The translations under genes and the position numbers were made by a program. Below the pieces are notes generated by a model. It was given only the letters and a program-made list of their open reading frames with translations. It had not been told where the DNA came from and made no database searches. 64,000 bases of DNA, from IMG/VR virus record IMGVR_UViG_3300024999_000029, positions 186,001 to 250,000 of that record. One strand, written 5' to 3'. Positions 7,027-58,711 of the stretch are shown here, in pieces (positions within the stretch are counted from its first letter, which is position 1; every line of letters begins with the position of its first letter).

Positions 7027-7037
7027 ATGAATAATTT

Positions 7038-34834: not shown

Positions 34835-35128
34835 TTAATCCCATCTCAAATCCTCTATATATTGAAACGGACGCGCTATTAATTTATAAGCATCTTCCAA
34901 AATTTCCAAATTAGACATCGTATCTATATTAATTATATCTAAAGATTTTATCTCTGCTAAACGAAGTAAAAATGGACTAAACGTGAAAATATTAATATCT
35001 TTATTGTAATTATCTTTTAATAACTCTACTTGTTTGGTAGGGTGAAACCTATCCCAGTTTTCCATATTATTATCTGGTGCATAGTATACGTTTAAAGAAG
35101 TGTATATTTTCATAATTAATTCCTCCAT
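34835..35128 (-). CDS. degenerate AAA_15/AAA_21 ATPase C-terminal fragment
   Basis: FHPTKQ (cf. LHPxxQ), FTFSPFLL (cf. TTHSPxxL), YKLIARPFQYIE. Confidence 0.45.
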   Translation of the reverse strand: MEELIMKIYTSLNVYYAPDNNMENWDRFHPTKQVELLKDNYNKDINIFTFSPFLLRLAEIKSLDIINIDTMSNLEILEDAYKLIARPFQYIEDLRWD

Positions 35129-35908: not shown

Positions 35909-36493
35909 TTATCTACTAACAACTACTGGAACAACCTTCAATTCCATAATTCGAGCTACAATATATCTGATATATCCGTCTATTAGTAATCCACTATTAT
36001 TAATTACTACTGGCGCATCAAGTTTATTATTGTTTTTATAATATTCAATACAAGCATCAACTTTTTCTTTTCTTGGCGTTGTTTCTAAGAAACATTTGGG
36101 TATTACTATTTTATCAAATTCTACTGAATCGCTGTTGTTATCAATTTCAATAGCACTTTTAAAACCAACATTTCTGATGAACTCTTTTCTTGATTCTGTT
36201 ATAATAACCACTGGTATTTGCATATGATTTAAAGATTTTGCTATAGAATAACCCCTATATCCGCTAACCAAAGAGTATTTGTCATTTTTCTCTTGTTTAA
36301 CTATTATTGGATTGTTCAGCACTGTTATATTTTTATTTTCAATTCTTTCAACTTCCTTCTTAAAAGTAACTCTGGCATTTTTATGTGTTTGTTCTGTGAG
36401 TATAACATCAACTACATTGATTATTTTTACCTCTTGTGACTTTACAAACTCTTCTCTTTTTAGTTGATTTTCTTTAATTATTTGCTTATTCAT
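35909..36493 (-). CDS. protein with two ParB/Srx-like N-terminal domains
   Basis: NPIIV...YSLVSGYRGY and APVVI...LIDGYIRY. Confidence 0.65.
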   Translation of the reverse strand: MNKQIIKENQLKREEFVKSQEVKIINVVDVILTEQTHKNARVTFKKEVERIENKNITVLNNPIIVKQEKNDKYSLVSGYRGYSIAKSLNHMQIPVVIITESRKEFIRNVGFKSAIEIDNNSDSVEFDKIVIPKCFLETTPRKEKVDACIEYYKNNNKLDAPVVINNSGLLIDGYIRYIVARIMELKVVPVVVSR

Positions 36494-37273
36494 AACCTTA
36501 TCCCCCTTTACTATTATTTTATATTCTTAATTTTATCCCAAACTTTCTGACAAGCTCTATAAAACTTATCATCATCGTTGACAGACCATTCTAGCAACTT
36601 ACTCAATATTTTTTCTTGCTTATGTGATACTTTGGTTTTGTTATACAAATATTTTTCTATCTCATTACTATAATCAATTACCATTTACTTCTCACCTACC
36701 TTTTCAAAAATAATAGTTGTTATAATTTCTGTATCACTTGTAAGTAAATTACTATTCATAAGTGCTGAGTGAGGCTTAGAGATTGCTGTTATAATCATAT
36801 CTCTGTAAATTATATTTGAATTTAATAAAAACTTATTGACATCTTTGTCTTTTGTTGATATATCCTTATTCCTAAATGTTTTTGTTTGGATCATATCAAC
36901 CAATCAACCCTTCTTTTATATTTTAATTATGCTAATCTATACGCATCTGTTATTGATCTGTCATATCCATCCATTTCAGCATTTATTAACGCTTGTTCTT
37001 TGGTTGGAGCAAAATAAATACCTATTACTAATTCTCCTGAAACATCATACCATTCATTGTCATCACAAACCGCATCTGCTTTTTTAACCATTTGTGAATC
37101 TCTTACAAAAGAAGCATTTACCACTATTAAATATTTATTCATTTTCAATTTCCTCCTTTATATATTTTTATATTAATGCCTATTTAAATATTTGTTCCAG
37201 AAGCATAATTCCATCAAGTAATAACTGGCTGCTGTTATAAGTCCATGGATAAACATTTAAATCACTTCCTCGC

Positions 37274-37630
37274 TTATATTAGATATATTAATAAATCCTT
37301 ATCAACCTTTTCTTTTGCCTGTTCAATGTTATTTTTAATAATGTATTGCAGTAAACTTCTAATATGAGCTGTCTTGTTGTTTCTTGTTTTCCCTACTGCT
37401 TCGCTTACATACTGTTCAATGTCTGATATAGATACCGTTGCTATATCTCTATTTATACGCTCCATAAATGCTCCAATATCAACTTTATATTGTACCCATG
37501 ATGTAATTTTATCTCCAAACTTTGATTTAAAAGCCTCATAATATGTTTGATTAACTGTAAGTAGATTATATTGCTTAATATGCTCTGCTTTTACCTTTAA
37601 AACCTTTTCACTCATTGTATACTTACCCAT
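37274..37630 (-). CDS. stand-alone integrase core-binding (SAM-like) domain
   Basis: Y..DI..F...DI..V...DIEQY...KTRNNKTAHIRSLLQY pattern of tyrosine recombinase CB domains. Confidence 0.5.
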   Translation of the reverse strand: MGKYTMSEKVLKVKAEHIKQYNLLTVNQTYYEAFKSKFGDKITSWVQYKVDIGAFMERINRDIATVSISDIEQYVSEAVGKTRNNKTAHIRSLLQYIIKNNIEQAKEKVDKDLLIYLI

Positions 37631-40106
37631 TGTTATGACCTCCTTTATAATTTAATTATACTAGTAATAATCTTTTTACGGTATCTTCGCCAAACTTATA
37701 TGCCTTACCGTCACTACATACTGCCTTAACTGGCATTTTATGTGCTTTAAGGTTTAACCCTTTAATTGTAAATGTTTTCCCGTTCATATTAAACTGCTTA
37801 TTATAATCTGTTGGTTTAAATCCAAACAACATACAGTATTTCTCAAATTCCGCTTGTTCAAAAGACTTTCCTGATACTTCTTTCTTATTTACTTGTAAAT
37901 CAAGATTAAAGCTGTTATCCGAATATTTAACTTTCCCTGCTTTGATATTTGCATTATATTTATCAGCTATTTGCTTCAATGCTTCCTCAACTTCCGATCT
38001 GAAATTTATAAATTCTTGCCTTGTTAACATTTTTTTATTCCTCCTTTATATTTTCGATAAACTAAGTTTTTTATTTAAATATAATATGTTTACTATTCTC
38101 TTTTACAAAATTTTCTGCTCCAGATATTTTTACAAACTTTTTAAAACAATCATCATGTATAAACTTTCTGTGTTTACTGCATTTATAAATGTAGTGCGAA
38201 TCTATATCTGTTAATAAAAATTGACTACATACAGGACAGACCTTACAGGATGCACTTTCATATGTTGTATTTGCATTTTTTATACCTCTAGAAACACAAT
38301 ATATATGTTTATTATTTCTTGTGTTTTTTTGGCTGTTCCTTTGCATTTCATTTATAGTCATTCTTTCTCTGCCACTTATAATCATCTTTTCTTTTCCAAA
38401 GTCCCAATCTGGGAATTTTGTTTTAATTATTATTGCTTTTATCGCCAACATGGTTATTATAGTATCTCTGTTATTATTATCCATTTGCTTCAATGTACTA
38501 TTAATATTTTCAGATACGAATCCATATGCTTCTGGAGTATTAATTGCTAGTATTATGTTATTGCTAAATTCATATATACTTATTTTTTGAGACATATCAT
38601 ATGTTATGGTCACAATTTTTTTTACTCCTTTTATTTTATATTTTTCATTAAATCTAATATTTTCTTCAAACTGTTATACTACCTTTATAAATTGAACGTA
38701 TCTTTCTGGCTTCCTGCATCTTGGTTTAACTACATTAAATACAACCTCTAGTGCATCTATTTCTCCTTGCAATTCTCTTCTAATTACATCTTCAACCTCT
38801 GTATTCATATCAATTGTTTCTCGTTTCCATAAATCAAAAATTTGGCTTGTCATACAGTTTGAAATTTGACACTTATCAACACTTTTTAATGATGCATCTT
38901 TAAATGTTTTACTATCAACTAATTCCTTACACTTGTTATCAATCCATTCTTGAAGCTTCATAATTACATCTCCTTTATTTTATATTTTACTTTAAAATGG
39001 GTAATTTATCAACCTTTTAAACCTTGCTGTTATACTAACCATTGATATTATCTAAGTCAACTCCATAAATATCTTTAGTCCAGTTTTTCAATATGTAATG
39101 ATAATTGATTAATCCTTCCCATTCTAGGCACTCTTCAAATACTTCATCTGGTGACATTTTGTTGAGCTGATCATCATGACTTTTATCACTCTCTATTAAT
39201 CCCTGTCTTTGTCTTAATTTCTTCAAAATATATTCTGGATATTGTTTCACGCTGTCCACCGCTCCTCTCTCCATTATACTAATTGTAAAGATAAAATTAT
39301 ACTTGCAAAACCCTGTATTGTCTTTACTCTCTGGATATCTGCAATTTCTTTATGTATTTTATTATTATGTTTATAAGATATTGCCCACTTATCCATATAA
39401 AATCACCTCCTGTTATACAATTTAATATTTATTAACCACACACCATAAAAATCTTTTTTGAGATTCTTTTAACTTTATATATTCTGAGCTGGGTTTATCT
39501 TGCTTAATTGCTTTTATTGCATTTATACATTCGGCAATTGTAATTGTTTTACTATTTTTAACTACTGGACTAAATTGCATATTGACACCTCCCTGTTATA
39601 TTAGATTGTGTTCTTTTAGCTTGTTATAAATCATTTTATATTCTTGATTTGTTAAATTTAATATTTCCTTAATTCTTTTTGCCTCTGCTTCTCTTATGTC
39701 TTGCTCCATCATTTTTTGAATTCGTGGTGTTATATTATTTATTTGTATTGCTTTTATAATTTCTTCATTTCTAGTCACTTTTAATCCCTCCTATTATAGC
39801 CTAACTTACACCTTGAAATGTTTTATGAGATTTTCTTTTGAATCTTAAAGTTCTTTTTCAAACATTAACATTGTACTTGCTCTAATAATTTCCGAATTAT
39901 TTTCACCTATTAATTCAATAAGTTCATTTAATAGTAAATCACAATCAGTAAAGCATTCTTTTTCAAGTTTATAATAAAATTCATCAAATTTATTATTTAT
40001 ATTTTGCGCCTTTTCAATATCTAAACCATATTGTAACATTAATAAATACATACTATAAGCCATTGAATTTAATTCTTTCTCGTTCATTATTATACACCTC
40101 CTGTTA

Positions 40107-40239
40107 TACCTCCTAATACCTTTATGTACCTCCTAATACCTTTATGTACCTCCTAATACCTTTATGTACCTCCTAATACCTTTATGTACCTAATTATACC
40201 TTTATGTACCTCCTAATACCTTTATGTACCTAATTATAC
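40107..40239. repeat. 20-bp tandem repeat TACCTCCTAATACCTTTATG, ~6.6 copies
   Basis: Directly visible; two copies carry the variant TACCTAATTATAC. Confidence 0.95.
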
Positions 40240-40673
40240 TTTGAAATGCTTCTTTTATCGGATTATTTTCAAGCATCCATTTTGAATTTTTACTATATTA
40301 CTTTTCCCAAACTTTATTGTATGTCCAATGCCTATTGAACTAATAATTATTCCTTTTACATATGAAAAGCTTTCTACTCTATCACCTTTTTTAATGGGTT
40401 TATATTCTGTTCTTGCTATATTCATTCTCTATACCTTCTTCCATATGAAAACTTTTCTTATTCTGTTTTTCAGTCAAGTGTTCAACTTCAATAATATCTT
40501 CCACATCAATATCTATGTCGTTCCATTGACCTTCTTCAATTATCTTTAATGCTTCCTTTTTAGAGTTTGCAATAACAGTTCCTTTTGCTGAACCAGCTAC
40601 TCTCATTATAAAATTAAAAGTTTTCATTCTCAACCCTCCTGTTATAAGTTAAAATACTTTTTTCATGTAATTT

Positions 40674-40937
40674 TTAATTTAATGTAGTTGTTTTTGCCAA
40701 TGGTTCTTCGCTGTTTTTCATATCTTTTATTTTTATAGTTGGTATATATTCAATTAAATCTCCAGCCGAACAAAGTAAAGCTTTACAAATTAGATCAATA
40801 TGTTTTAATGTTATTCTTTCAATTGTTTCATTATAAATTTCACTAATTGTATTCGGTCTAATTTTAGTTAATCTAACTAAATCCGCTTGATTCATTCTTT
40901 TTTCATATAATAAATCAGCTAAATGTAACTTAACCAT
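40674..40937 (-). CDS. XRE-family HTH regulator
   Basis: LADLL.EKRMNQADL...TISEIY...ICKAL.C..GDLIEY. Confidence 0.85.
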   Translation of the reverse strand: MVKLHLADLLYEKRMNQADLVRLTKIRPNTISEIYNETIERITLKHIDLICKALLCSAGDLIEYIPTIKIKDMKNSEEPLAKTTTLN

Positions 40938-43644
40938 TTTTAATCACTCCATCAAATTCTAATTCTATTGTTTAACCTCTGTTATTATTCCAATAACCGT
41001 TTCCCCATTTTTTAAATGTGCATAAGCTATGCCGTCACTATCCTGCGTTATCCTTACAACGTCTTCAAATATTCTATTGCCTGTAAAAATTACAGTCATG
41101 TTTTTACACCTCTGTTATATAATTTACTCAAATCTTTGCTTAATATTATTCATAATACAGCCTAATTCACTAACTGTTATATCTTCCTTCTCCTGCTCCA
41201 TATTCCTGCTAATATCTATAAAATTTAATACCTTTTCAAACTCTACCGCCTCAAGTTCTTTAACTGCTATTTTCGCCAGTTCTGTATTTGATATTATCAT
41301 AACTTTCGCCTCCTGTTATATTGAAATACGGATTTTATTTGTTTATCTTTCAAATAATATCTCGAAAATTGGTATGCCTTCATTTCTCATTCCGCTTAAT
41401 GTACCTCTTAACTTTTCTAATTGTTTTTTAACCGCTTGACGTTTTTTATCTTCTCCGATAACTCTATCATCTAAATATATTACTGAGAAATTGCCTTTTA
41501 AAATATCATCCTCCATGAATTTATAAATCATTTCATCTATTCCAGCATTTACAATTGCATTTCTAATTGTAGTTAATACATTTATTTCTGTTCCGTAAAA
41601 TGTACAATCAAGCAAGCATTTAAAAGCCGTTTCATTTTCATTATACATTTTCTCTAATCTTATTGTTTTTTCATACATGATTAATTCCTCCTTAAATTTT
41701 GTTCAAATGCTGAATTTATTTTATTTTAAATTGTTTTCAATTCTTTTTGCCCATTCTATATAATAACCTTGTTTGCTTACTGGAATATCTTTAAACATAC
41801 TCCAAAACATTTCTGTCAAATAAGTATCTCCTATTCTTTCGGCAATTTCTTCAATTTCTTTTAAATTCTTTTCTTTATTAGTCATTGAATAAAACCTTCT
41901 TTCTATTTGTTTTAGTTGAACTATTTTTCTATTTCTGTTATACTTAAATTGTTATATAGCTTTCTAAGCGTTCGAATCGGGATGTGCGGTAAACGTAAAA
42001 GCTATATAGTTTTAACCAATACACAATGTGTATTTAAATTGTAGTAAAATTTGATTTTTAACCAATACACATTGTGTAGGGAATAGGACTGATATAAAAG
42101 CCAGCCCTATTTTTGTTCCTGTTATATTACTTTGATTAAATCATATTTTCCTAAAAAGTTTTTAACAATTAACGCTTCACAAGGTTCAAACTCATAATAA
42201 CGGTCATCCTCTTCATCCGCTGGAATAGCTCCTTTCGTTAACCAAATTATATCACTATCAAGCACTATCTTACGCAACTCTTTTAATTCGTTAATGGCTT
42301 CTTGAGATGGACTATATTTAATATCCCATTTTGCCCTATCATCATAGTCAAGGATAAAGCCATCAAATTCCTTTTCTGCTCTTTCTAATACATAATTTTT
42401 GTGCGCATATTGCCCTAACTCCAAACAATCTTTTAAATATTGACTTCCATTTTCTAATATCCATTTTTTCTTTTCTTCTTCTCTTGCCAACTTTTCTTCT
42501 TGCTCTTTTCTTTTCTTTTCTGTAATTTCTTGTTCCTTTGCTTTTCTTTCCTGTTCCTTCTTATCTATTCCTTCTTGTTCTTTATCTGCATATTTAGCCA
42601 AAAATGACTTTGATAATTCTGAATTATTGGGAAATATAATTTGATCAAAGCTATGGCTTCCATAATTATTAATTTTTAATTCAAAACTAGTCCAACTATA
42701 CCAAGCACCATATGTTGATATAAAAGGTTTAATGTTGATATCTATTATTTCATATTCTAATTCTTCAGCCTTTTTCAACCATTCTTGATTATTATCTTTT
42801 TGTAATTGTTTGGCAATTTCTTCTTTTCCATTTTCAACAAACCAAGCAGCTTGAGCATATCCTCTCTGTTCTTCTTCTGTTATTTTATCACAAAATTTTA
42901 AAACCTCTACATAAATATGATTTACCAGTTCATTTTGATTTTTCATAATACTTCTCCTTCTGTCTGCTCATTACAGACATTTCAAAATTCATTAATTTTG
43001 TTATAGTTTCTCATTTCTAGCTACTATAAAACCGTTATGTTATGCTCTTTTATGGCTCATACACAAGCCATATATTTTATAGCAGAATTGCTATTTTTTC
43101 AATAAATCCACTCATCGAATTAGTTTTAGCTGTATCAATTTTAGCTTTTCCGCTGGCGGTTATTTGGTAAGCTGTTATATCAGTATTACAAACCTCAACC
43201 AAAATACTACCGATTGGTAATTTATGTTCAAAATTTATATTTAAGAAATCTCCAATAAAAGCATAACCATTTGTTTTCGTAATATCTACACTTTTAATGA
43301 CCTTTACCCAGTGTTTGTATTTTGTTTTATGATGATTTGCTGAATTTTTGCAGTCGTGAGTATAAACTATTAATTTTTCTTCAGGTGGCTTTCTGGATTT
43401 TAATTCAGAATTGATTAATTCATTCAAATTTTTTAATTCTTCAATTGACATATTTTTTAGAGTTTCATTATTAAACATTTTATTTTCCTCCTTGGCTCAT
43501 TAGCCTTGAATTTTGTAACAGCTCATTAACTGTTATATGTAATTATATGTTAGTGTTTATCAACTGTCAATATTAGTATAATACTATCATATACGATTGT
43601 CAAGAATTCTATGCTATTATTTTATATTTTATTTCATTAATTTA

Positions 43645-43908
43645 CTATTGCTCTATTAATTGTGTTATATCAATATTTAATAAGTTCGCAAGTTTTAAAG
43701 CTATTTCAAAGGCTATAGTATGACGTTTTTTGGGCTGTCTATATGCGTATATTGTTTCTATCTTTAAATTCAATTTATCGGCTATATATTGGGTTTCACA
43801 GCTTGACTCATTGATATATTTTACAATATTTTTCTTAATAATTACAGGATCAACACTGTTATAATAATTAATGAGTGCTTCCAATTCTCTTTGTTCTTGT
43901 GTAATCAT
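43645..43908 (-). CDS. HTH protein
   Basis: IADKLNLKIETIY...FEIALKLANLLNIDI. Confidence 0.65.
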   Translation of the reverse strand: MITQEQRELEALINYYNSVDPVIIKKNIVKYINESSCETQYIADKLNLKIETIYAYRQPKKRHTIAFEIALKLANLLNIDITQLIEQ

Positions 43909-45091
43909 GGTTTCGCCTCCTGTTATTGTAGAAAATCATGGTTTTATCTTAAAATATTATCACATACTCTATAGCCCATTAATGCAATTTCCCTTGATGA
44001 TACAATTTTTGAATTTGAATCTTTAAAGCACTCAGTTTCAAAACTAGCTTTTTTTAGTTTTATATAGCTCTCCTCTTGTTTCGTTTCCCAATTATAAAAA
44101 ACTATTGTTTGCCCTTCTTTTACGGCTTTTAATATTTGTATGACTTCTAAATCTAACATTGTAGAGCCTCCTCAATTATATTTTACTTTTTGTTATACGT
44201 TAAAATTGGATTTTTATTCATTTATTAATTTTTCTATTGCCCAATCTGTAAAACTATCTCTTTCAATAATAAATAATTGATCATCGATTTTTATTTCAGT
44301 ACCATTTTTTAATGGACAGTCTGGCTCGCCTGTGAAAGTATTCCAATGATTTACATAAATTCCTTTTGAATATCTGTCTTTTATATGTCTACTATAAAAC
44401 CTTTTTGTGTTTTTATCTTGATAAATTACTCTACATTGTCCCGTTTGTTCTTCAATTTTAATTAAGTCTAACATTTTTTATTCCTCCATGTAATATATTT
44501 TGGTTCGTGTTATATAATATTTTGGCTTATTAATATAATGTATTCCATTTTTCGGTCAAATAGTATTCTGGTATTTTATATTTACTTTTTAACTTGTTGT
44601 ATGTAGTAACTGTTATATCAATACACTCATCTATTGTTGGTATGCCTATTTTAAAGCCTTTTGGATATTTTTTTAATCTCTTTTCAATCTCTCTTTTACT
44701 CTTAATATAAACCAATCCTCTAAAATTTTCATCCTCATCTAATTTAACATAGATTTTATTACCAAAAGCATCTTTAATTTTTTCGTCAATTAATTCCATT
44801 TTTAAAACCTCCATGTATTATATTTTAGTTTGTGTTATATGATATTGTGAGTTTATCTAATTATCTAAATATAATGATATTCTTTGTTTTAGATAATATT
44901 GATTTAAGTCTAATATTGCAGATAGTTTCATTATGCCTTTATTATTAAATGTAAAATTATAGCCATTAAGTCTAATATATTCATTCCAAAGTTGTTTACC
45001 TTCATACCATAAATTTCTTTGTTCAGTAGTCATTTTTAAAACTCCTTTCAGATATATTTTGACTTCTGTTATATAAAATAACCATTTTATA

Positions 45092-47803
45092 TTATACTGC
45101 AATTTCATTTGTTTCTTCTTCCTTATTCAATATTATAATTCTTGTTTTAACATTTGTCATTTCAAAAGTTCCACATTCCAGACTTATTGTATCATAGGTT
45201 TTTTCTTCTAGCCATTCTCTAAAATTTTGACTTTCTTTATCATTCGCAAAAGTCCAATGTTCTGAAGTAATTGAGATTAATTTTCCGCCAGTTTTAAGCA
45301 ATTTGTAAGCGTGTTGTAAATGTTTTATATCTTGATTATTGGTGAATGGTGGATTCATTATTATAGCATCATAATAATTATATTTTTGATATTCTAGTAA
45401 GTCATTACCTATTACATTATGATTTTTTAATCTCAATAATTCTGCAAAGCTGCTATTCCACTCTATAATGTCAACATATTCTGTTATAGCTTTTATTTGA
45501 TCTGCAATATTGCCTATTCCTGCTGACGGTTCTAGCACCCTACTGTTATTGTCTATGTTTGCAAATTCAATCATTTGTGAGGCTGTTTCTTTTGGCGTGA
45601 AATTTATATCTCCTTTTTGTCTTAGTTTATATTCATTTTCTAACTTTTTAATTTTTTGTTGTATCGGATTTTTGTATCTGTCTATGCTATTATAAATTAT
45701 ATTATATTCCTCAACGGCTTTCGTTAATTTTTGAATATTTGTTATTCCGTATTTTTTTAATTTGTTTTGTTTCGTTGGTACTTCTTTGTTATACCATCCA
45801 TCCAAGGGTAAGGAATAATCTACTTGCGGAAATTTTAAACCTTGCGTATTCCTTCCATACTTCATTATATAATACTGGTGAATATTTTCCCTAAATGCGC
45901 CAACTATCAAAGCTTTTTCAAGTTCTGTTATTACTGTATTATCAATTAATTTTTGTTGCACATATTCCAATAATTTTATATTAATTTCTAATGATTCTTT
46001 TTTACTATCTCGGCTTTCTTGCTCTCTCATTCTTTTATATGTGTTTGTTTGATAATCTCCTGATAATGCTGCTATCTTGCTCTGCAATGATTCTATATTT
46101 TTATTTATCTTTTCAAGCAAATTATTCTTTTCGGCTTGTTGTCGCTCATGCTGTTCTTTTTGTTCCGCTTCTGCTTTAATTGCTTGTAATACGTTCTTTA
46201 ATCCTTCAAATTCGATATAGTTTAATAACTGTTCTGTTATATTAATATTATGCTTTTGCACGTATTCAGCAATATTATTTTTATATTCTTCATTTGTGAA
46301 ATAGTTTTCACTATTTAAGCCCAATTTGCAAATATTTTCCGTTGATTCATCAATAATATTATCTGCTGTTTCTTGCTCTTTGTTTGTTGTTACTTCTTCA
46401 GATTGTGGAATATTAACACCTTTTAAAGCTTCTGACGGTTCATATCTAAATATAAAACCATGTTTAAATTTAGAATAATAACCTTTTATTTTTTTCATTT
46501 GTTCCGATACTTTTATATATTCATCACTTGTTAGTTTATTAACTATTTTTACTACCCATAAAGCGGAATTGTCGCGCGTGTCTGTATCGGCTGTTATAGT
46601 GTATTCATTATTAATAATATTTGAATTTTCGGTTTGTTTCGTCTGTTCTGTTATAACTTCTTTTGATTTTTTAGATGTTTTTTTTACCTTTTCAATCTTT
46701 ACCCATTTTTCAACCTCTGTTATTTCCTCAACTTCTTTTAGTTCAAATATTTTTATATTTCCTTTTTTTAAGTCTTTTAACATTCTATCTTCATAATCAT
46801 AATATCTTTTAGGGTTTGTTAATTGCATAAATTTTCTTTTTTCGCTTCCTACTATTTCGTAACTAAAAGAATTTTTTTCTTTCCTTATTCCTTGCCATGT
46901 TCCGCTTCTGATTTGTTCGCCTGTTATCTTCCAATATCCGCCATGAGTTGTAAATGTTAAATAGTCGCCAATTTTAAAAGAATTCCTTTCAACTTGAACC
47001 ATTTTTAAAACTTTTTTTACTTCTGTTATTGTCTTTTTTTCATATCCTGCCTTTACTTGTTGGTCTTCTGCTTCTTTTATATTTTCTTTTGTTCCGTCAT
47101 ACATACCACTAAAACCATTTACAATGCTTTCTATTTTAAGAATAAATGTTTTAAAATCATTTACGGTTTTTAACTCTTTTTCTGTTAGTTCTTTCTTTTG
47201 TGGCTGCTCTCCGTTCCATCCTCGCCAGTGTGTATAACCTTCTTTATATTCCATTTTTATAATGTCGAATTCATATTCTTTCGGTAAGTCCGAATATTTT
47301 GTTATTCCTGTTCCTTTATCGTATATTCTACTATCTTTTTCTATGTGCCATTTAGACGTTGAAGGGTTCGCCATAAATAAAGGATATTTATATTTTAATG
47401 TTTTTGTATTTTCTTTTGTTTGTTGTTTCTGTTCTGCTGATTCTTTTATTTTTTTTATTAGTTTTTTAGCGTTTGTTTCTTCTCCTTCTGTTGCTCCGTT
47501 CGCTTGCGTCATTGCTTCAAGTTTTTTGATTTTTTCATAGTCTATATTTGAATTTATAGTGCTGTTATACGAATATACTTCTTTTCCTGAATAGTTTTTT
47601 ACTTGCCATTCCTCAACGTCAACACACAGTAAAAAACCATTTTTTTCTGCTATTCCATCCCAAGAAGCAGGGTCGTAATAATCACTCATAGAGTCGCTTT
47701 TATCTTCTTTATATCCGTATAGCTTCCAGCCTCTATTTCGTAGTTCGTGTGCTATTCTTACTTTTGCATCCCTCATATCATAATAATTACTCATGTTTTG
47801 CAT
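45092..47803 (-). CDS. large protein with C-terminal N6-adenine DNA methyltransferase domain
   Basis: FTP, VLEPSAGIG (SAM binding) and MNPPF catalytic motif in the last ~180 aa; long uncharacterised N-terminus. Confidence 0.8.
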   Translation of the reverse strand: MQNMSNYYDMRDAKVRIAHELRNRGWKLYGYKEDKSDSMSDYYDPASWDGIAEKNGFLLCVDVEEWQVKNYSGKEVYSYNSTINSNIDYEKIKKLEAMTQANGATEGEETNAKKLIKKIKESAEQKQQTKENTKTLKYKYPLFMANPSTSKWHIEKDSRIYDKGTGITKYSDLPKEYEFDIIKMEYKEGYTHWRGWNGEQPQKKELTEKELKTVNDFKTFILKIESIVNGFSGMYDGTKENIKEAEDQQVKAGYEKKTITEVKKVLKMVQVERNSFKIGDYLTFTTHGGYWKITGEQIRSGTWQGIRKEKNSFSYEIVGSEKRKFMQLTNPKRYYDYEDRMLKDLKKGNIKIFELKEVEEITEVEKWVKIEKVKKTSKKSKEVITEQTKQTENSNIINNEYTITADTDTRDNSALWVVKIVNKLTSDEYIKVSEQMKKIKGYYSKFKHGFIFRYEPSEALKGVNIPQSEEVTTNKEQETADNIIDESTENICKLGLNSENYFTNEEYKNNIAEYVQKHNINITEQLLNYIEFEGLKNVLQAIKAEAEQKEQHERQQAEKNNLLEKINKNIESLQSKIAALSGDYQTNTYKRMREQESRDSKKESLEINIKLLEYVQQKLIDNTVITELEKALIVGAFRENIHQYYIMKYGRNTQGLKFPQVDYSLPLDGWYNKEVPTKQNKLKKYGITNIQKLTKAVEEYNIIYNSIDRYKNPIQQKIKKLENEYKLRQKGDINFTPKETASQMIEFANIDNNSRVLEPSAGIGNIADQIKAITEYVDIIEWNSSFAELLRLKNHNVIGNDLLEYQKYNYYDAIIMNPPFTNNQDIKHLQHAYKLLKTGGKLISITSEHWTFANDKESQNFREWLEEKTYDTISLECGTFEMTNVKTRIIILNKEEETNEIAV

Positions 47804-50800
47804 CTCCTTTGATTATATTTTGTTTAATTGGTATGGAGTTTTTGCAGATACTCCAATAAGCTGTTATAAGCTGTTAAACGGCATTATCAAATATTTCTTT
47901 AAAATCTTTTTTATAATGATTCCAATGTATTAAACTATATAATTCAGAAAATTTCATATTTAATATATTTTCGCTCGGTTTATTTAAAATATTTTCTATT
48001 ACTTCAACTTTCCAAGGCTTAAAATATTCACCAAGTTTTATATTACATTTTACAATAACTTGCATGGTTGTATGATTTGTTATATCAATATTATTTAAAA
48101 TATGCCTATCTTCTGGATGTTCTTTTTCTGCTATATGATAAGATTCAATATAATTTTCAATAATAAATGTAAACTGTGAATTTATTATCCCATTGCAATA
48201 TATATTTATTTCTGTTTCAATATCTTTTAAAAATTCAATTGCATTATTTGTTGACGTATAATTTTTATATAATAAGGTTTTTGAATGTGTTTCATAAAAT
48301 ATTTTACCATTCCACTTTTTTGCAATTTCCCATAATCCGACAATCTTCAAATATCCATGTTTATAATCATATTCTACATGATAATTTTTTGGTAATCCCT
48401 GCAATATCATTAATCCTGCTGAACCTTGTCTTTTAAAATGTGTTTTAATCATTTTTTCATTACCTCCATTTAATTTATATTTTTGTTATACTACTAAATG
48501 AATTTATTCCATATTTCTTTCAAGTTCAAAAGCAGCTATATCAACTGTTATATCAATTTTATATTGTAGAATTTAACAATAAACAAATATGTTAAATTTT
48601 CAATTTTTCCATAAATGCCATCAAATTGACCGCATCGCTAAGATGTTCATTTTCATATTTAAAAAATAACTTGTAGTTTTTCAATTCATTTATTTTATTT
48701 GTTTCAATTTGACATAATTCAGGGTTTTCTGTATAGACCATTACGCTGCCATCTTTTTTTACTTCAATACTGCATAACCCCTTTTTTTCTAAAAAATAGC
48801 ATATTTCTTTACGTACTAGTATTATTTCAATTCTATCAATCATGTTTAAGCCCTCCTAAAATTCATTTAAAAGTTATATTTGATTAAAAAGTTCTTCATC
48901 TTGTAAATCTGCAATTAATATATATATTTCAACTTCAGTCATTTTTTTACTAATTTTCACCATATTGCTTTTTTTAAACATATCAGTTCTAAAATAAAAT
49001 TTAATTTCTTTACTGTCATAGTTTTCTAAATATGGAGTATTACAATTATTCCAATTAATTTCATCATATAATTTTTTATCATCGACAAATTGAACCCCCT
49101 TGACTATATAGTCACAAATATTTTTGCCAAATTTAAATATATTCTTACGTTCGTAAGGATTTTTCCCTCTTATATCTTGATGAATTGCGCGTGATAAATA
49201 TCTTAATTGTTTTTCATTTAACTTAATCATCTTTTAAAATCTCCTTTTATTTTTAGCTGCTGTTATACAATTATATTTTAATTCTCACAGCTGCCAAAAG
49301 TTTTTATTTATTAAGTATAAGCATATTAAATTAATTATGATTGATTCTATGAAAATGTATGCTATAATGTTTTTAAGCGAATTTTTTAATTTAGTAGGGT
49401 TAAATTTTAGCTTGTGGGCTTTACATCTCGACAATGTAAAGCTTTTTTCTATTAGTGCGTAGGTAGTCATATTATTTTTATATCTCCTCTCTTTTTGTTA
49501 TCTGGTAGCGAATTTTTAAAGAATCCGCCAAAACTTTTATTTTACATTATATGTATATTTGTAGATATTTCCTAACAATTCAATTTCTACAGTTCCAACT
49601 TTCTTTGATTCGCTAACATTATGAATTTTTATATTTTTGATGATTGAATCTAATGTGTATGTTTTAATTCCTGCAAAAACGTTACTGGACATTGTTAAGA
49701 TTAAAACCGTTGTTATTATTACTTTTTTCATATTCTTATATCCTTTCTTTTTTATTGAGTTTTTACCCTTTATCACTTGCATAATTTTATGTTTTAATTA
49801 TGCAGCATTAGCTTACACAAGTAAAAATTATAAAATATGTGCATTGCCTTTGTTATCTATACCATTCAATTCTCTAACTCCAAATCCTGTTTTAATTTCC
49901 ATCTTTTTAAAATCAATGTTGCTAATCGTTGCTGTTACATACGTTTGATAATTTAACTGACATACTTCAGTTTGTAAAACCGTTACTGTGTCCCCTTCTT
50001 TCAAACTCTTAAATTCTTTTTTAGTCATTATTTCAAAAACCTCCTTTTTATTTATTTTACTGCTACCTTGACGGCTGTTATACCGTCAAACGCTTTGAGC
50101 TTAAAGTCTATTTATACACGCTCAAACGTGTTAATACAAAAATATAATTTTATTGGCTTTTAGGTGGTGCAATATAACCCATTTTTTGACCTTCAGAACA
50201 TATTTCACATAATTTACTAATTAGATTATATTTCCAGTTTTTTCTGGTAATCAATTTTTTTAAGATTTTATGTGCTTGTATATAATGATATTTGTTATAT
50301 GGCATTCTCAAAACCTCCATAAAATTATTTATTCATTGCAACTTCTAATTCACTAATTTTATTATTAAACCATTCAATTTCCTTTTTTAAGTCTGTTATA
50401 TCTTCTTCAGATAATTTTATATTGCTAATGTATAAATATTCTTCATTAGTTTCGAAATTTTCCCTAAAACGGCATTCACAGCCAGACTCCAATTCTTTTT
50501 TTGCAATAACAAGTGCTTTATTTTTTAACCTATTATATTCTTCTAAAAACAAATCTTTAAATTCGGCTGAATATTTATATTTTGATGTCTTGCCAACGCA
50601 CGCATAATATCTTTTGTCTTTACTGTAATACTCATAACCGCCACATCTTGCACTACTATGAGTAAAATTGCAGTTACTTATAAAAGCACTCTCTTGAGCA
50701 TCAGATAAATCTATTCTTGCAATTTCTCGACCTTTTAAAGTTGTTATAATTACATTATCAAACCAAGTTTTTTTCATGTTTTAACCTCCTTTATTCTCCT

Positions 50801-51474
50801 TTAAATTTAATATTTTTCCATTAAAATGTCAATTTTACTTTATCTTTAACACTTCCCAAATTCCATCAATTCCACTAAATTCATAACAATTTTTTAGTTT
50901 TAAATCCCAAGTAGCTTTTAGTTCTTTTACTTCTTTTGTATCAACATTTTTTAATATAAAAACTTTCATTTTAAAAACCTCCTTTTTATTTAATTACTTA
51001 TCTAATAACATAAGCTGTTATAACAAACTAACATTTTACATTAATTTTATTTCAAATTTAAAAATCACAGTCAAGCAACTTAAAAATTATATATGTATTG
51101 TTTAATATCTTATGTTATTAGTAATTAATCAAAGTTTTTTGGAATTTATTATAATTTCTGCTACGTTTTATAATTGCTACACTATGTGTTATTTACTCTT
51201 ATACGCTCCCGCTAACATTGTGTTGTTAATATGCGTACTATGTATAAGATACAATTATAAACCTTTTAAGGATGGTTATTTCCTGCAATTTTAGGGATAT
51301 GTAATCCTAAAATTTAACTGCTATTTGTTGCAGTCTGCAAATTCAATATTCAATTTTATAATTGATAGATAACGTCAATATTAGCTAAGTCAAGCCAATT
51401 TTATTGGTATGGTTGAACGTCCACAAGTATAGATATAGCTACCGCAAGGTGACTATCAACTTAACTTATAATTA

Positions 51475-51503
51475 ATTATAACATAAGTAAATTGATATTG
51501 CAA
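51475..51503 (-). promoter_or_regulatory. leftward early promoter TTGCAA-17-TATAAT with extended -10 TG
   Basis: Sequence match at the head of the leftward arm; TAAAATATAAAA motif immediately upstream. Confidence 0.6.
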
Positions 51504-52106
51504 TACTAATTTTATATTTTACTTTTATAATATTAATATGCAATTACTTATTATATTATACATATTAATTTTACATGTTACGATGGTATTGTGAGGTCGT
51601 GAGAGGCTCATGGTTGAATGTTTATATGGTTTATAGTCAAGTATGTATAAATAGGGTAAAAGCAGCTTAATGGTATTGTATTTTTTAATGTGAGCTATTT
51701 AATATTTATATAGGACTATAGTCCTATCTTTTAAGACTATTTTGTGCTTAGTATCTAGTCATAAAAGTGGTGAGTGTATACTCTATTTAGTATGTTTTTA
51801 TAGTCAAAGTGGTGATTGTTTGAAAACAGTTAATCAATGAGTCAAAATAGGCTATATAATAGACTTTATAGGTTTGTTTATACTATTACCTTTTTATTGT
51901 GTCTATGCAATTTTAGTGCTATTTTAAAGGTAGTTATTTTTATGAATTGTTTATTATTTACATACAATTTAATATAGTAATTTGATATTATGTAAGCATT
52001 AATATATTTAATGTTTTAATTATTATTTATTGATATTGTTAATGTTAGTATTAATTATATTAAGGTGTCAAGTAGTTTGACTTTACAGTTGTTGTATTTA
52101 GATTGT

Positions 52107-52195
52107 ATAGGTCTATAGCACTAATGATATATAGGTATAAAGTCCTAGTGTAATGTAGGTCTATAGTCCTAGTAGTGTATAGGACTGTGGTATTA
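52107..52195. repeat. 24-bp-period array of ATAGGNCTATAGTCCTA-like palindromes (perfect copy at 51710-51727)
   Basis: Copies start at 52107, 52131, 52155 and 52179. Confidence 0.8.
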
Positions 52196-53272
52196 TGTAT
52201 TCACCAAGTCGCACCTTGTTATAACGAAAAAAATGAGTGATCACTCATTATCCAATTAATACCATATTTATTTTTAGCTTTTTATCCTTCTTCTCCAAAC
52301 AGAAATAAAAATAACAATTACCATTTATTCCCATATACAAAATTCAGACTAAATTGAGTATGATAATAAATCAATTATCTATCTGATTTATTCAAATTCA
52401 CATTCAATTTTCGCAAAGTTCCAGATAAGAATATTTATGTAGAACTACTAGAACACTGCTAACCGTAAGCGTAGGGGATAGTTTACAAATTTTAATCAAT
52501 TATTTTTCAAGAAATGCCCCGTAGCACTTCTATTCACACACTAACTCAATTTTCCAATATTTCACTCTAAAATTAACTTTAAAATTACAAAAAATAATCA
52601 TAAATAATTTTACTAATTAATTCCATTCATATTTAAATCTATCAATAAATATTATCAAATATATTATTAAAACTATTAAAAATCACAAAATTTCGTTCGT
52701 AACCTCTGTCGATAAAACTCACTTATATCAACAAAAACTCTGATTTTATAATTCTAAAAATTAACCAATATCTTTACATAATCAACATCAAACCTTACTC
52801 CTACACTACTTAAACGATATAACCACATTCTGGACTAAATATTCTATTATTGGCATCCCTAATTAATCAGAAAATCATCTTCAATTACTACTCTATCTAA
52901 GCTTATATAAGTATTTTAATAATTTTTGACGAAGTAGCTAAATTTTAACAATGATAAAAATGATAAATTTGAACTTTTTTACGTTTTGATTTGTGTAGCG
53001 TAGCGGAACAAAACAAATAAGCAAAACATTCTGATTAGTAATAAATAATTAGTAATTATATAAACACATAAATTTTAAAATTTTGAAAAAGAATACTCAC
53101 ACTATAATCTATTTCTAAGTTATAATATGAGCTTGGATTTGGTGGGAGGAGAGGTTGTATTATTTTGTGGATTATTAGATTAGCTAAAGTCCCAAATCGG
53201 TAATTTATTATTATATGTTTTTCCACCGTTTTGTGACTAAGTTTTATATTTTAGTTTTCTTATCAACTGTTT

Positions 53273-54751
53273 TTATGTCATGTCAAATAATTTCCAATAC
53301 CTTTTACCTTTATTCTCTCCATATGTTTCTTGTATAGATTCCACTCTATATTTTATTTTATTATCTGCAAAATATCCATTAATAGTATTAACGCCTAAAG
53401 ATTTGTGATTCTTATCAACTGTTTTTATAGCATTAGCTTTTATAAATTTTTTAAATACATTTTTTTCATCCTTAAACATTTTAATATCAATAAACTTTAT
53501 TAACTGTTCATTAAAAGTCTCAGTAGTAATAATATCATCCAAACATTTAAATTCTGATATTGGAATCCTGTATCTATCACACAATATCTGGAGATGCCCT
53601 AACTTATTAGTCAACTGTTTATTAGTATCAGTAATCTGTTTTGCTAATTCAATATCTGATTGTAACTTATAATACAGTGCATCATTCAATTTTAGAGCAA
53701 CTGTTTTATCTTCCTGAATATTATATATCAATCCGTTAGTATTCTTCCTGCTATGTACATTTATATAATCCTCTGGAGTACTGTTTAAAAAATACTGCCC
53801 ATACTCAAATATTTTATTCCACTGATTCAAATATGACTGTATGCTATTTTGTTTAAATTTCCTAATATAAATATTTGGTTTATCATTCTCATTCTGGATT
53901 CTTTTTCTACCTATACATTGCTGAATTGTATCAAAATCATATATATCCACAATTATATGTTTTAGCTGTTCATCTTTAATATTAATTCCATTGTCTAGTA
54001 CTTTTGTGGTAAATAAAGTTCTGGAATCAAATTTAGAATCTTCCACAATCTGATATCTGACATTCTTATCTGAAAATTTAAACTTACTATTATTCTCGCT
54101 GCACAAGAATGAAGAATCACTTTTCATTTGTTTATGCATAATTAACGCTTTAGTTGCATCATTACAAAACATAATAATCTTTTCTTCTGGCGGTTGATTA
54201 TTTATCATTTCTATAATTGTTTCATCACTATTGTAATAGTATAAATTCTCATAGACTAATTCATTATTAAGTATGTAAAGTTTTATATTTTTATTTATTA
54301 CTTTCATGTATTCTTTAAATGTCTCGCACGTAGCTGATAAGAATATAGCAATATTATTTTTCAGGTTAATTAAATAGTGTAATGCAATATCTGTTTCAGC
54401 ATTAAAGTTACTATCTGAAAAGAAAAAGTGGCATTCATCTGCAACTACATACTTGAATCTATCTATATTAAATTTACCTCTTTTTAGTATCTCTATTAAC
54501 TGGTGATAACTAAGTGCTGTGATATTTGGCTTTAGTTTAATATCTTCTTCAATTTGCTTCTTTAATAGTTTTCTATTGGTTAAAAATAATATCTTATTGT
54601 GAGTAATTTCAGCATAGTCATTTAATCTAGTAATGACAAAATAACTCTTACCTGCGCCAGTGGGGGCGTTAATTAACACCTTATCTTCCATAACCCATGA
54701 GAGCATATCGGATTCAGGAATAATATCTGATATAGTTACTCTATTTACCAT
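53273..54751 (-). CDS. SF2 (DExH) helicase-like protein
   Basis: APTGAGKS, VADECH, SAT, LDNGINI, QCIGRKR. Confidence 0.85.
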   Translation of the reverse strand: MVNRVTISDIIPESDMLSWVMEDKVLINAPTGAGKSYFVITRLNDYAEITHNKILFLTNRKLLKKQIEEDIKLKPNITALSYHQLIEILKRGKFNIDRFKYVVADECHFFFSDSNFNAETDIALHYLINLKNNIAIFLSATCETFKEYMKVINKNIKLYILNNELVYENLYYYNSDETIIEMINNQPPEEKIIMFCNDATKALIMHKQMKSDSSFLCSENNSKFKFSDKNVRYQIVEDSKFDSRTLFTTKVLDNGINIKDEQLKHIIVDIYDFDTIQQCIGRKRIQNENDKPNIYIRKFKQNSIQSYLNQWNKIFEYGQYFLNSTPEDYINVHSRKNTNGLIYNIQEDKTVALKLNDALYYKLQSDIELAKQITDTNKQLTNKLGHLQILCDRYRIPISEFKCLDDIITTETFNEQLIKFIDIKMFKDEKNVFKKFIKANAIKTVDKNHKSLGVNTINGYFADNKIKYRVESIQETYGENKGKRYWKLFDMT

Positions 54752-56000: not shown

Positions 56001-57095
56001 TTATTTTTTAATCTTATTAGATATATTTATAAAAACACCAATATCACATTTTTTAATAGCATCTAATAACTCTTCTTTACTATAATTATCTAATAAACTT
56101 AAATCAATTTCTTCATCCATCCTATAACTTAATTGAGATGTATAATTCCTCTCACCTTTAGCATACTTTTTCATTGTTGTATTAGGATCTCCGTGATGTC
56201 CTTGTTTTTGTGTTTTCAAAACATCTTTTGTCATTTTCCAAGCGGAGTCACATGAGCTTGTTTTAAGAGAATGTATACCTATATTTCTTTCTTCTCTATC
56301 AATATTATATTGCTCACAGAATTTACCAATAATTTTGTATAAAGTTTTATCACTTATATTAAATATCCTCTTTTTATTATCATCATCTTTTTTTAGTTGT
56401 AATAATTTTTCATAAAATTTATCACTTATAGCCGTAGGATCTTCTTTTCCACCTTTATCTATAACTTTTATAACCCAAACCATTGCTCCAGTTTCAACAT
56501 CTTCTTCTCTCTTGATATCTTTCCATGTCATATTTAATACTGCTGATTTTCTAATACCAGTGACGTAACAGGTTTGGAAATATAAAGATGCAATTAATCC
56601 TTTATCTCTATATGTTTGAGATTCTGCGAAACTATATAAATCTTTTCTCTCTTGATTTGAAAATGGGGAGTAGCTGTTTGGATTGTCATCAAGTGAGTCC
56701 ATGTAAAAAATAACTGAATCAATATCATTATTTTTTGTGTGCAAATAATCAAATAGTGATTTTAGTCCCGCTATTTTAGAATTAACTGTACCATTGGAAT
56801 TTTTTATTTTCCCAGTTTTTTTATTTTCCTTTTTTAGTAGATATGTGACAAATAGTTCTACATCGTCACTATTTATTTTTTTTAAATCATCCCATGTTAA
56901 TATACTTAAATCTTTTCCTGTGGCATATTCAAAAAATTCTTTAATATGACCCCTATAACTTGATTTTGTATGTGAACTTTTTCTTTTTTCAAGAAACATA
57001 TTAATGTAACTAAACACTGAGTTATTTTTAAATCCCACCACCATTGATCTTGAATTTTTCATTTCTTGCAATTCTGTCATAATTATTTCCTCCAA
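56001..57095 (-). CDS. tyrosine recombinase/integrase
   Basis: CB domain; TGIRKS (R), KGGK (K), HSLK, GHH, KKY (catalytic Y). Confidence 0.85.
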   Translation of the reverse strand: MEEIIMTELQEMKNSRSMVVGFKNNSVFSYINMFLEKRKSSHTKSSYRGHIKEFFEYATGKDLSILTWDDLKKINSDDVELFVTYLLKKENKKTGKIKNSNGTVNSKIAGLKSLFDYLHTKNNDIDSVIFYMDSLDDNPNSYSPFSNQERKDLYSFAESQTYRDKGLIASLYFQTCYVTGIRKSAVLNMTWKDIKREEDVETGAMVWVIKVIDKGGKEDPTAISDKFYEKLLQLKKDDDNKKRIFNISDKTLYKIIGKFCEQYNIDREERNIGIHSLKTSSCDSAWKMTKDVLKTQKQGHHGDPNTTMKKYAKGERNYTSQLSYRMDEEIDLSLLDNYSKEELLDAIKKCDIGVFINISNKIKK

Positions 57096-57244
57096 TATAT
57101 TTATTGTTAACTTTATATTTAAGTTTCTTCATAAATTTATTATAACCCATATTATAATAATTAGTCAATAGATAAATTTGAAATATTTATAACCTTCTTT
57201 ATTAATATGACTGATAATTTAATGAATTAAAATATAAAATAGTA

Positions 57245-57273
57245 TTGACATTTAAAGACATAATGTATATAAT
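57245..57273 (+). promoter_or_regulatory. consensus sigmaA promoter TTGACA-17-TATAAT for the rightward arm; divergent promoter at 57139-57168
   Basis: Perfect hexamers; AAAATATAAAA directly upstream. Confidence 0.8.
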
Positions 57274-57661
57274 TAACACTGAAAAGAGGTATGCATATGA
57301 CTGATTCAGAAAAAACAGTTAGAAATATTAGTTCAGCTAATGTGTGGAATACATTAATGGATAAATTGGATTTAGATTTAAAGAGTATTCAGAATAATGG
57401 CAAGTGCATAACATTAGGCAAAAAAGAAGCAGAAAAAATTCTAAAAAAGTATAAAAACTAAAATATAAACTAGGAGAAAGTTATGGATTGTAGAAATTGC
57501 GAAAATTACAGTGGCTATTGTGTCATTGAAATTGATATTGACCCATTAGAGATAATGGACGGATATTGTTTTAAGTTTAGATATAAATGTAAATCAAGTT
57601 TTCAGTATGATGAAGATGATATCTACACAAAAGATAATTATAAAGAGAGTGAGGAGTAAAA

Positions 57662-58711
57662 ATGGGATCAGTAAAGATTGATATTTATAAAGATGATAGA
57701 AAATATTTTGAAACATCGTATTCCAGTGAAGAGGATATATACGACATATTATGGTTGTTGGATATTATATTGCAAGATGCTCAAAAGGGTAATAAGGAAG
57801 CATTAATCACTTTAATGGATTTGAAAAATTTGATGACAGTTAATAATCCAGTATTTAATGAATATACCAATATTCAAATGGGATTCAAACCTATGAAACT
57901 TGAAGACCAAGGGAAAGAAATAATAGAAGTTGTGGCAAGTAGATTAAACATGCCGAAAAAAGAATGTGAAAAACAAGTGTTGAACGCTGTGCTACATATC
58001 AAGAAAACAAATTTAAATAATTGGTATGATTGTATTAATAAAAATTATAAAAGTCATATAGTTGCTGCGAGAAAAAAGAATTTTGTTGATGCTTTAGTAT
58101 TTTTACCTAGAAGAACTTTGGCTAGTCATGAGGGGAGCAAGATTACTTCTGAGAGCTTGTGGCAGGTCGATTACTGCAAGAAATATGTGGTGGCTAAACA
58201 TATTTATAAGGGAGATACCTATCCTGAAGATTTGCAGGAGTTGATTGAGTTATTAAACAGCAATAAAATTAAGTTAGATAAATTAAAGGCTATAAAATTA
58301 AGAACTGGTAGTGAAAAATCTGAAATGAATAAAAGGATTAAATTGGATATTTCAATTAGAGATGATATCAATATTTTAAAAGATCATTATAAAATACCTA
58401 GAAATCACAACTACACGGAAGGACAAGACGTTAGTAACAATGAGTTAATGTATTATAAAAGAAAACCAATAGAGTTTGAAGAACTTGTAGAGAAAGAATA
58501 TGACAACTCTGAAGCTTTAAATGAATGGCAAGTTGAAAAAATAAAAAATATTGCCAGTAAGATATTAACCAAGAGGCAATTGGTTGTATTTAGTCTTTAT
58601 TATGAGTCTAGATTAACTCAACAGGAGATTGCTAGTATAATAAATGACGACCAAAGGAATGTCGCCGATGCTATAAAAAGAATTATTAAAAAAATAAAAG
58701 AGAAAATTTAG
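57662..58711 (+). CDS. protein with C-terminal sigma-70 region-4-like HTH
   Basis: LTKRQLVVFSLYY...LTQQEIASII...V...IKRIIKKI. Confidence 0.7.
   Translation: MGSVKIDIYKDDRKYFETSYSSEEDIYDILWLLDIILQDAQKGNKEALITLMDLKNLMTVNNPVFNEYTNIQMGFKPMKLEDQGKEIIEVVASRLNMPKKECEKQVLNAVLHIKKTNLNNWYDCINKNYKSHIVAARKKNFVDALVFLPRRTLASHEGSKITSESLWQVDYCKKYVVAKHIYKGDTYPEDLQELIELLNSNKIKLDKLKAIKLRTGSEKSEMNKRIKLDISIRDDINILKDHYKIPRNHNYTEGQDVSNNELMYYKRKPIEFEELVEKEYDNSEALNEWQVEKIKNIASKILTKRQLVVFSLYYESRLTQQEIASIINDDQRNVADAIKRIIKKIKEKI

Follow-up and report, generated by a model that had tools for sequence, protein, structure and literature searches.

A gene-free inversion of strand composition as a candidate packaging or terminal-repeat region in an SPbeta-like groundwater phage

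We analysed a 64,000-nucleotide window of a virus record from groundwater metagenomes (IMG/VR record IMGVR_UViG_3300024999_000029; 349,050 bp, about 28% G+C; the window is its bases 186001-250000) and focused on a gene-free stretch of about 2.3 kb at window positions 50970-53272, hereafter the hub. The plus strand of the hub turns abruptly from G/T-rich to C/A-rich, and the same signature marks the mapped ends or packaging start of two relatives, Psychrobacillus phage Perkons and Bacillus phage SPbeta, which is why we consider the hub most likely a packaging region and not a replication origin. Our analysis suggests, with somewhat better than even confidence, that it is a packaging or terminal-repeat locus with flanking early promoters in an SPbeta-like temperate siphophage of about 175 kb. 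Positions are those of the window unless a genome coordinate is given, and a strand is stated wherever a feature has one.

Comparison of the predicted proteins of the record with each other showed that it holds two collinear related genomes of about 175 kb, head to tail, whose amino-acid identity ranges from 25% to 97%. We refer to the first (about 1-173 kb of the record) as variant A and to the rest, which includes the window, as variant B. Because variant A is also known by itself, from a 154-kb contig of a different sample (terminase 100% identical; rated 90% complete), the record is probably a joined assembly, that is, a chimera, although it is rated 99% complete. The counterpart of the hub in variant A lies at genome 73990-75632, and a third hub variant, C, was found in a 139-kb contig.

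The hub contains no credible open reading frame (ORF) of at least 50 amino acids under genetic code table 11, table 4 or a code with TAG read as glutamine. Reading TAA as glutamine does open frames in it; that code has no support anywhere in the genome and was dropped. ARAGORN found no tRNA in the hub, no Rfam family reached its gathering score (an E-value threshold returned only noise, with E of at least 1), and the hub DNA had no similarity match among phage or plasmid records. On the left the hub is bordered by a 44-amino-acid ORF closing a run of small minus-strand genes, and on the right by the stop codon of a 492-amino-acid minus-strand helicase gene. The first-pass annotation, made from the letters alone, had described a non-coding hub at 51030-53270 with an octamer zone stopping at its left edge, a helicase gene at its right edge and a G/T-rich left side giving way to a C/A-rich right side, and each of these features was borne out, the last by both base counts and skew in 200-bp windows. 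The features that define the hub and its arms are as follows.

50970-53272: the whole gene-free hub (ORF, Rfam and tRNA scans; contig of run X4)
51015-51022, minus strand: last, hub-proximal copy of the octamer TATAACAG (octamer scan)
51560-52200, plus strand: G/T-rich left arm (skew, conservation, change-point at 52200)
51560-52231, plus strand: base counts of the G/T-rich left arm, G 121, C 55, A 208, T 288
51930-52070: A+T-richest stretch of the hub, about 18% G+C (composition profile)
52200-52530: weakly skewed middle of about 330 bp, candidate terminal repeat or packaging-start block (three-segment fit)
52250-52935, plus strand: base counts of the C/A-rich right arm, G 43, C 124, A 273, T 246
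52530-52932, plus strand: strongly C/A-rich right arm (skew, conservation, three-segment fit)

Plus-strand GC skew in 200-bp windows runs from +0.27 to +0.52 over 51500-52199 and from -0.17 to -0.74 over 52200-52899. We scanned the whole 349-kb record for drops from positive to negative GC skew between adjacent 600-bp arms. The two hub copies gave the two highest values, 0.98 for hub A (genome 74750) and 0.91 for hub B (window 52200), followed by 0.56 for the next site, with a standard deviation of 0.145. The inversion is far beyond chance and exceeds that at convergent gene-block junctions; the genome-scale switch of gene strand lies elsewhere, at about 57200, in the gap that separates a minus-strand recombinase-like gene from a plus-strand sigma-like one. 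The asymmetry is kept in variants A, B and C even where their sequences are not homologous, with a G:C ratio of about 2.2:1 in the left arm and a C:G ratio of 2.6-3.5:1 in the right arm. Placing a 250-bp gap between the arms raised the inversion score from 0.81 to 0.99 in B and from 0.85 to 1.17 in A, and a three-segment fit gave a weakly skewed middle of 330 bp in B (52200-52530), 290 bp in A and 280 bp in C. A k-mer survey for a motif common to the G-rich strands of both arms yielded nothing convincing.

Perkons (MT325768) has short direct repeats of 264 bp at its termini, mapped with PhageTerm (PMC13245101). When we circularised its genome, the junction was a gene-free region of about 2.15 kb bordered by a homologue of the helicase beside our hub, with a skew that is +0.4 to +0.67 over the roughly 500 bp leading up to the repeat, about zero within it and -0.44 to -0.7 beyond it. 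The highest inversion in the Perkons genome (0.74; next 0.49) falls inside the 264-bp repeat, and a change-point fit ended the G-rich arm at a point 13 bp away from where the repeat truly starts. Perkons thus resembles the hub in its gene-free junction, its G-rich then C/A-rich arms, its top-ranking inversion, the short repeats in its G-rich arm and its bordering SF2 helicase. It differs in that no sequence similarity to the hub is detectable beyond short motifs, and in that its ends are mapped whereas the hub is known from contigs alone.

In SPbeta, mapping has placed both the opening point and the start of packaging in the interval from yonP to yonR, and next to it comes a block of raised coverage about 250 bp long (bioRxiv 10.1101/2021.11.22.469490). 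The 952-bp yonP-yonR spacer shows a skew of +0.3 to +0.69 and then of -0.2 to -0.4, and it holds the top inversion of that genome (0.73; next 0.53). SPbeta is like our phage in its homologous terminase (36.5% identity) and in having a gene-free spacer with the top plus-to-minus inversion. Its G-rich arm is filled with TAGGGGA- and ATCGTAA-type repeats, recalling the repeat-bearing arm of the hub, and its block of about 250 bp after the opening point is similar in length to the weakly skewed middle. Unlike the hub, the SPbeta spacer lies between the YonO late operon and yonR, the place of yonO being taken in our phage by the sigma-like gene, and SPbeta is described as packaging by headful from a pac site.

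Four further phages were compared. The concatemer junction of T7, with its 160-bp terminal repeat and flanking short-repeat arrays, is like the hub in that the repeat is followed by a C/A-rich CCTAAAG array with a skew of -0.64, and unlike it in lacking a G-rich arm before the right repeat; terminase and phage are unrelated. We dropped the idea that the T7 arrays are mirror images, as the right-hand repeats run in the same direction as those on the left. Clostridium phage c-st (404-bp terminal direct repeats) is likewise a large low-G+C Firmicutes phage with gene-free flanks carrying repeats (CGATACAC) and a mild positive then negative skew, but its signature is weak, ranking third in its genome. 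Lactococcus phage AM1, where the skew pattern is absent, and Thomasclavelia phage TR-TP1, where it is one-sided (C/A-rich arm only), were dropped as further examples. The signature is therefore strong in the two closest relatives with mapped ends or packaging start, and it is not universal.

The first-pass annotation had offered either a virion genome end or a replication origin as the meaning of the hub and had proposed the neighbouring helicase as the partner for a replication assay. The comparison with Perkons and SPbeta strengthens the first of these, and a helicase-served origin is not supported. For an origin, the 24-bp repeats of the left arm would be iterons, the stretch at 51930-52070 the unwinding element, and the bordering helicase would load there. 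An iteron-like array of 3.3 copies does stand beside a stretch of about 18% G+C, its repeats differ between variants as iterons do, and a DnaA-box-like TTATCCAAT follows directly after the palindrome at 52232-52249 and is conserved in A and B. This TTATCCAAT is the only such site, however; the hub has no TTATNCACA box and no DnaA-box cluster. The helicase is of the SF2 DEAD/ResIII type, not replicative, and is missing beside the hub in A and C, where unrelated genes of unknown function stand in its place; it is part of a variable cassette and not a conserved partner of the hub. Moreover, homologues of replication genes lie 40-60 kb away. Origins switch from negative to positive skew, the reverse of the polarity of the hub, and in Perkons and SPbeta the same signature marks mapped ends, not origins. 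We consider an origin quite unlikely; if it were true, the hub would be the replication module of a poorly known phage group.

Alignment of the variants divides the hub into conserved blocks and variant-specific stretches (50970-51470, 51850-52200 and 52933-53085).

51472-51849: block conserved between B and A, 70% identity
51475-51545: near-invariant block in all three variants (three-way alignment, promoter scan)
52336-52544: block conserved between B and A, 67% identity
52697-52932: block conserved between B and A, 78% identity
52933-53085: 153-bp insertion specific to variant B (alignment)
53086-53173: best conserved block, 84% identity to A and C, with two plus-strand TATAAT boxes

The near-invariant block carries a predicted leftward sigma-70-like promoter (TTGCAA, a 17-nt spacing, TG-n-TATAAT, leading from 51503 to 51475) directed at the small early genes; we found no further copy of the block elsewhere in the genome, and it is confined to the hubs. 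In contigs of co-occurring variants, 52932 is followed directly by 53086. Exact-pattern scans of IMG/VR returned only variants A, B and C, no further hub variant was found in metagenome, phage, plasmid and genome collections, and a search of the genome collections by DNA pattern and by alignment of the recombinase gave no host or prophage copy. The additional hits of the metagenome scan were unrelated, being either 24-nt chance matches in a gut bacterial coding gene or matches in G+C-rich contigs. The former arise from the 24 nt at 52695-52718, which recur letter for letter, with unrelated flanks, within a common gut bacterium's coding gene that is seen in many gut metagenome contigs.

Short palindromes and repeats concentrate in the hub, which holds 3 of the 26 perfect palindromes of at least 16 bp in the record, an unusual density.

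51596-51612, plus strand: small hairpin in which four one-sided changes keep the pairing (RNAalifold columns 59-75)
51710-51727: perfect 18-bp palindrome ATAGGACTATAGTCCTAT, containing the first copy of the 16-mer TAGGACTATAGTCCTA (palindrome list)
52106-52183: tandem array of TATAGGTCTATAGTCCTAGTGTA, candidate protein-binding array, for example of small-terminase sites (TRF; repeat family D1)
52232-52249: perfect 18-bp palindrome AATGAGTGATCACTCATT; on the minus strand a weak hairpin, then U7
52471-52527: inverted G4/C4 pair GTAGGGGAT ... ATGCCCCGTAG, inside the conserved block 52336-52544

The 16-mer TAGGACTATAGTCCTA, allowing up to 3 mismatches, has four copies in hub B (at 51711, 52108, 52132 and 52156) and none elsewhere in the variant B half; a single match, inside an ORF, was found in the variant A half. 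Three of the copies are included in the TATAGGTCTATAGTCCTAGTGTA array (24-bp period, 3.3 copies, TRF score 80). The corresponding segment of variants A and C holds other repeats, and each phage has short repeats of its own in its G-rich arm.

The palindrome AATGAGTGATCACTCATT sits at exactly 52232-52249, as the first-pass annotation had it, but the central role it was given there did not hold up. Whereas that annotation had the strand switch coincide with the palindrome, the two are adjacent: the fitted change-point is at about 52200, 30-50 bp to the left. Perfect palindromes of at least 18 bp number 10 in the record against 4.9 in shuffled sequences, so one of 18 bp is not rare, and the homologous 75 nt at the switch in variant A, about 75% identical to those of B, are not palindromic. 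The palindrome is thus specific to variant B, not conserved and statistically not unusual. These facts also bear on the proposal that it is the core of an attP-like or dif-like recombination site for the tyrosine-recombinase homologue encoded 3.8 kb away, with its inverted halves as arms to either side of a central spacer. Between the three variants the recombinase is conserved at 79-81% identity, yet the palindrome is lost in A. In addition, 6+6+6 bp is little for a core of that type, site and gene are separated by a variable gene cassette, and the genome collections held no prophage or host copy, all of which makes a recombination site very improbable.

The strand composition could also be that of RNA. 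Two convergent non-coding G/U-rich transcripts, one rightward from about 51540 and one leftward from about 52930-53200, would both end at the palindrome acting as a terminator. In both arms the G/T-rich strand is the would-be RNA strand, and on the minus strand the palindrome forms a hairpin (about -6 kcal/mol, a stem with 2 G-C pairs) followed by the U7 tract, which could be a weak terminator. The changes in the hairpin at 51596-51612 are wobble-compatible on the plus strand only, which is weak evidence that the plus strand is transcribed there, and the left arm has a plus-strand folding z-score of -2.9. Several results argue against such RNAs: no Rfam family was matched, consensus folds from the three sequences are weak with negligible covariation (terms of -2.9 and +2.7 kcal/mol), the right arm has folding z-scores of -1.2 and -0.7, and whole-arm z-scores are unconvincing. 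The terminator hairpin is weak, was not reported by a terminator scan and is lost in variant A. Five runs contain the sequence, all as contigs; none of them is RNA or raw reads. We regard convergent RNAs as improbable.

A further possibility is that the hub controls lysogeny or early genes, with the 16-mers as repressor operators resembling the SPBRE sites that MrpR binds in SPbeta and the conserved blocks as early promoters. MrpR binds a site at the yonP promoter, within the same spacer as the packaging start (PMC10516654), and the hub offers four copies of a hub-specific palindromic motif and a conserved promoter-like block facing early genes. The motif is confined to the hub, however, whereas SPBRE sites are spread over many promoters (PMC10516654). 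No MrpR homologue was identified, the nearby recombinase-like protein being similar to YopP and showing no similarity to YopR/MrpR. Control of this kind would also leave the arm-wide skew unexplained. Such control is plausible, yet we rate its probability as low, a little above that of an origin or of convergent RNAs; it is compatible with packaging, and because the SPbeta spacer also has a master-repressor operator, a regulatory role can coexist with packaging at one site.

We now return to packaging and propose how it might use the hub. The terminase would recognise and cut the replicating concatemer there, and the hub would lie at, or carry, a short terminal repeat of the packaged genome. 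The repeats of the G/T-rich left arm (the 24-bp array at 52106-52183 and the four palindromic 16-mers) could be sites for a packaging recognition protein. The weakly skewed middle at about 52200-52530, which starts at the palindrome, may have its counterpart in the 264-bp repeat in Perkons and in the SPbeta block of about 250 bp; the C/A-rich right arm comes after it. The outer conserved blocks at 51475-51545 and 53086-53173 probably act on the flanking early genes as promoters or regulatory sites.

The terminases are consistent with such a scheme. The large terminase genes lie at genome 93288-95057, genome 250098-251909 and L054:1435-3273, and their products are Perkons-like, SPbeta YonF-like and Basilisk/Stills-like, respectively. 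That of variant A is 52.6% identical to the Perkons terminase, and that of variant B, whose gene lies just beyond the right end of the window, shows 36.5% identity to YonF across 97% of its length. Pairwise identity among the terminases of A, B and C is 21-26%, while the early regions are 70-95% identical, and the upstream YonG-like genes (in B from window 63158 onwards) are divergent between A and B. These sequence comparisons indicate that the packaging module has been swapped among three closely related backbones. Variant-specific repeats together with three very different terminases fit a recognition site that changes with its enzyme.

We treat short motifs in common between the hub and its relatives as leads and not as tests. 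The single copy of GTAGGGGAT in the 349-kb record lies in the hub, and the motif is also present in the G-rich arm of Perkons. ATGCCCCGTAG is found at 52514-52524, and (T/A)TACCCCC stands just inside the terminal repeats of Perkons (136594, 47 nt in) and c-st (22-30) and, in the SPbeta packaging spacer, at 64579, the start of a skew plateau. TACCCCC/ATGCCCCGTAG could be a common cutting or recognition motif or a coincidence; a search for the TACCCCC pattern allowing mismatches did no better than the control.

Several observations weigh against packaging. The site in SPbeta and Perkons is the divergent spacer beside the late operon, whereas the hub, though 12 kb upstream of the terminase gene as in the relatives and next to early genes, lies 4 kb inside the early block, separated by recombinase, nuclease and helicase genes from the true divergent point at about 57200, where the spacer (57096-57290) is only about 195 bp long. 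The bordering helicase gene points toward the hub, while that of Perkons reads away from the repeat. The terminases of A and B differ, yet these variants have the 75 nt at the switch in common. Fitting three segments in place of two brings only a marginal improvement, and the signature is weak in c-st, absent in AM1 and one-sided in TR-TP1 and T7. Finally, no physical end has been mapped, the sequence being known from contigs, one of which spans the hub unbroken: this 6147-nt contig of run X4 covers 50000-54697 with 0 differences, which speaks for contiguity in the assembly and is silent on virion ends. The unitig breaks at 51492-51520 and 52903-52932 fall on blocks common to co-occurring variants, not on ends. 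The word depth of Logan unitigs in the hub centre (51492-52932) was 9.9 against 6.7 and 6.67 in the flanks for run X2, and 45.9 against 25.7 and 38.3 for run X1; we did not use these values as evidence, since contig depth is unreliable, though a terminal repeat that is read twice would raise depth.

The left edge of the hub is also the end of a polar signal. Along the 18.1 kb left of hub B, the plus-strand octamer CTGTTATA, which reads TATAACAG on the gene (minus) strand, is found 36 times against an expected count of about 1, and never in the opposite orientation; the last copy is the one at 51015. The zones of TATAACAG extend over window 33926-51022 (genome 219926-237022) and genome 60969-73521, the latter with 19 copies in the 12.5 kb left of hub A. 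Elsewhere in the record there are almost none, and only 4 in the opposite orientation. About half of the copies lie inside ORFs, with codon phases of 5/0/15, and several immediately precede a Shine-Dalgarno sequence or follow a -10-like box by a few bases. An FtsK-like translocase as the reader of the octamer was considered and dropped, as no homologue of the FtsK-like gene of c-st was found. Some 900 bp to the left of the hub, with a small early gene on either side, lies a Pistol ribozyme (50061-50131, minus strand; 68.7 bits, E 2e-10), which contains one of the TATAACAG octamers, at 50075.

More widely, mirror-symmetric strand asymmetry next to the termini may be a conserved, undescribed hallmark of SPbeta-group genome ends, the strand that ends 3' at each terminus being rich in G and T over 0.4-0.7 kb to either side of a short terminal repeat. 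We put this forward tentatively, as a generalisation that is possible and rather doubtful; our literature search did not find mirror-symmetric skew around short terminal repeats of SPbeta-group phages described. The asymmetry could be a mutational footprint of cytosine deamination on 3' tails that end resection exposes in each infection, in which case the bias would cancel inside the repeat, as in Perkons. It could instead be a functional subterminal element. Combined with the one-sided 13-18-kb zone of TATAACAG abutting the hub, it would amount to a polar 'entry end' architecture.

Packaging and terminal regions are already known as a kind, and the skew signature may be of use in predicting where genomes end. 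Because the scan found both the Perkons terminus and the SPbeta opening region, it could be a cheap predictor of ends for SPbeta-like phages known only from metagenomes. If our reading is true, sequence alone suffices to place the ends and the packaging site of an uncultured groundwater phage of 175 kb. Prediction of this kind would help in orienting genomes, in recognising chimeric assemblies such as this record and in deciding which fragments to use in packaging or transduction tests.

Matches of the terminase, the YopP homologue and the helicase, together with about 20 proteins of each half that match Perkons, place the phage in the SPbeta group; judged by these matches, it is a large temperate Firmicutes siphophage of the SPbeta/Perkons group. 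The two genes behind these matches that lie closest to the hub are given here.

53273-54751, minus strand: SF2 DEAD/ResIII helicase (Pfam and PHROG matches; 27.6% identical to Perkons ORF1)
56001-57095, minus strand: tyrosine-recombinase-like protein ("integrase"), YopP homologue (30% identity, E 5e-34)

Perkons ORF1 is the first gene after the left terminal repeat of that phage. Beyond the divergent point, the late plus-strand block opens with the gene for a 349-amino-acid protein with sigma-70 region 4 (57662-58711, plus strand), in the position that the YonO-type RNA polymerase has in SPbeta, Perkons and TR-TP1; a YonO homologue was not found in the record. Far to the left, a NAD-dependent DNA ligase of 1043 amino acids (19761-22892, minus strand) has c-st as its best named phage match. 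Phage ligases match it in two pieces covering about 62%, which suggests a large insertion, possibly an intein. A skipping-rope RNA motif lies at 7037-7156 on the minus strand (52.5 bits, E 1.2e-9).

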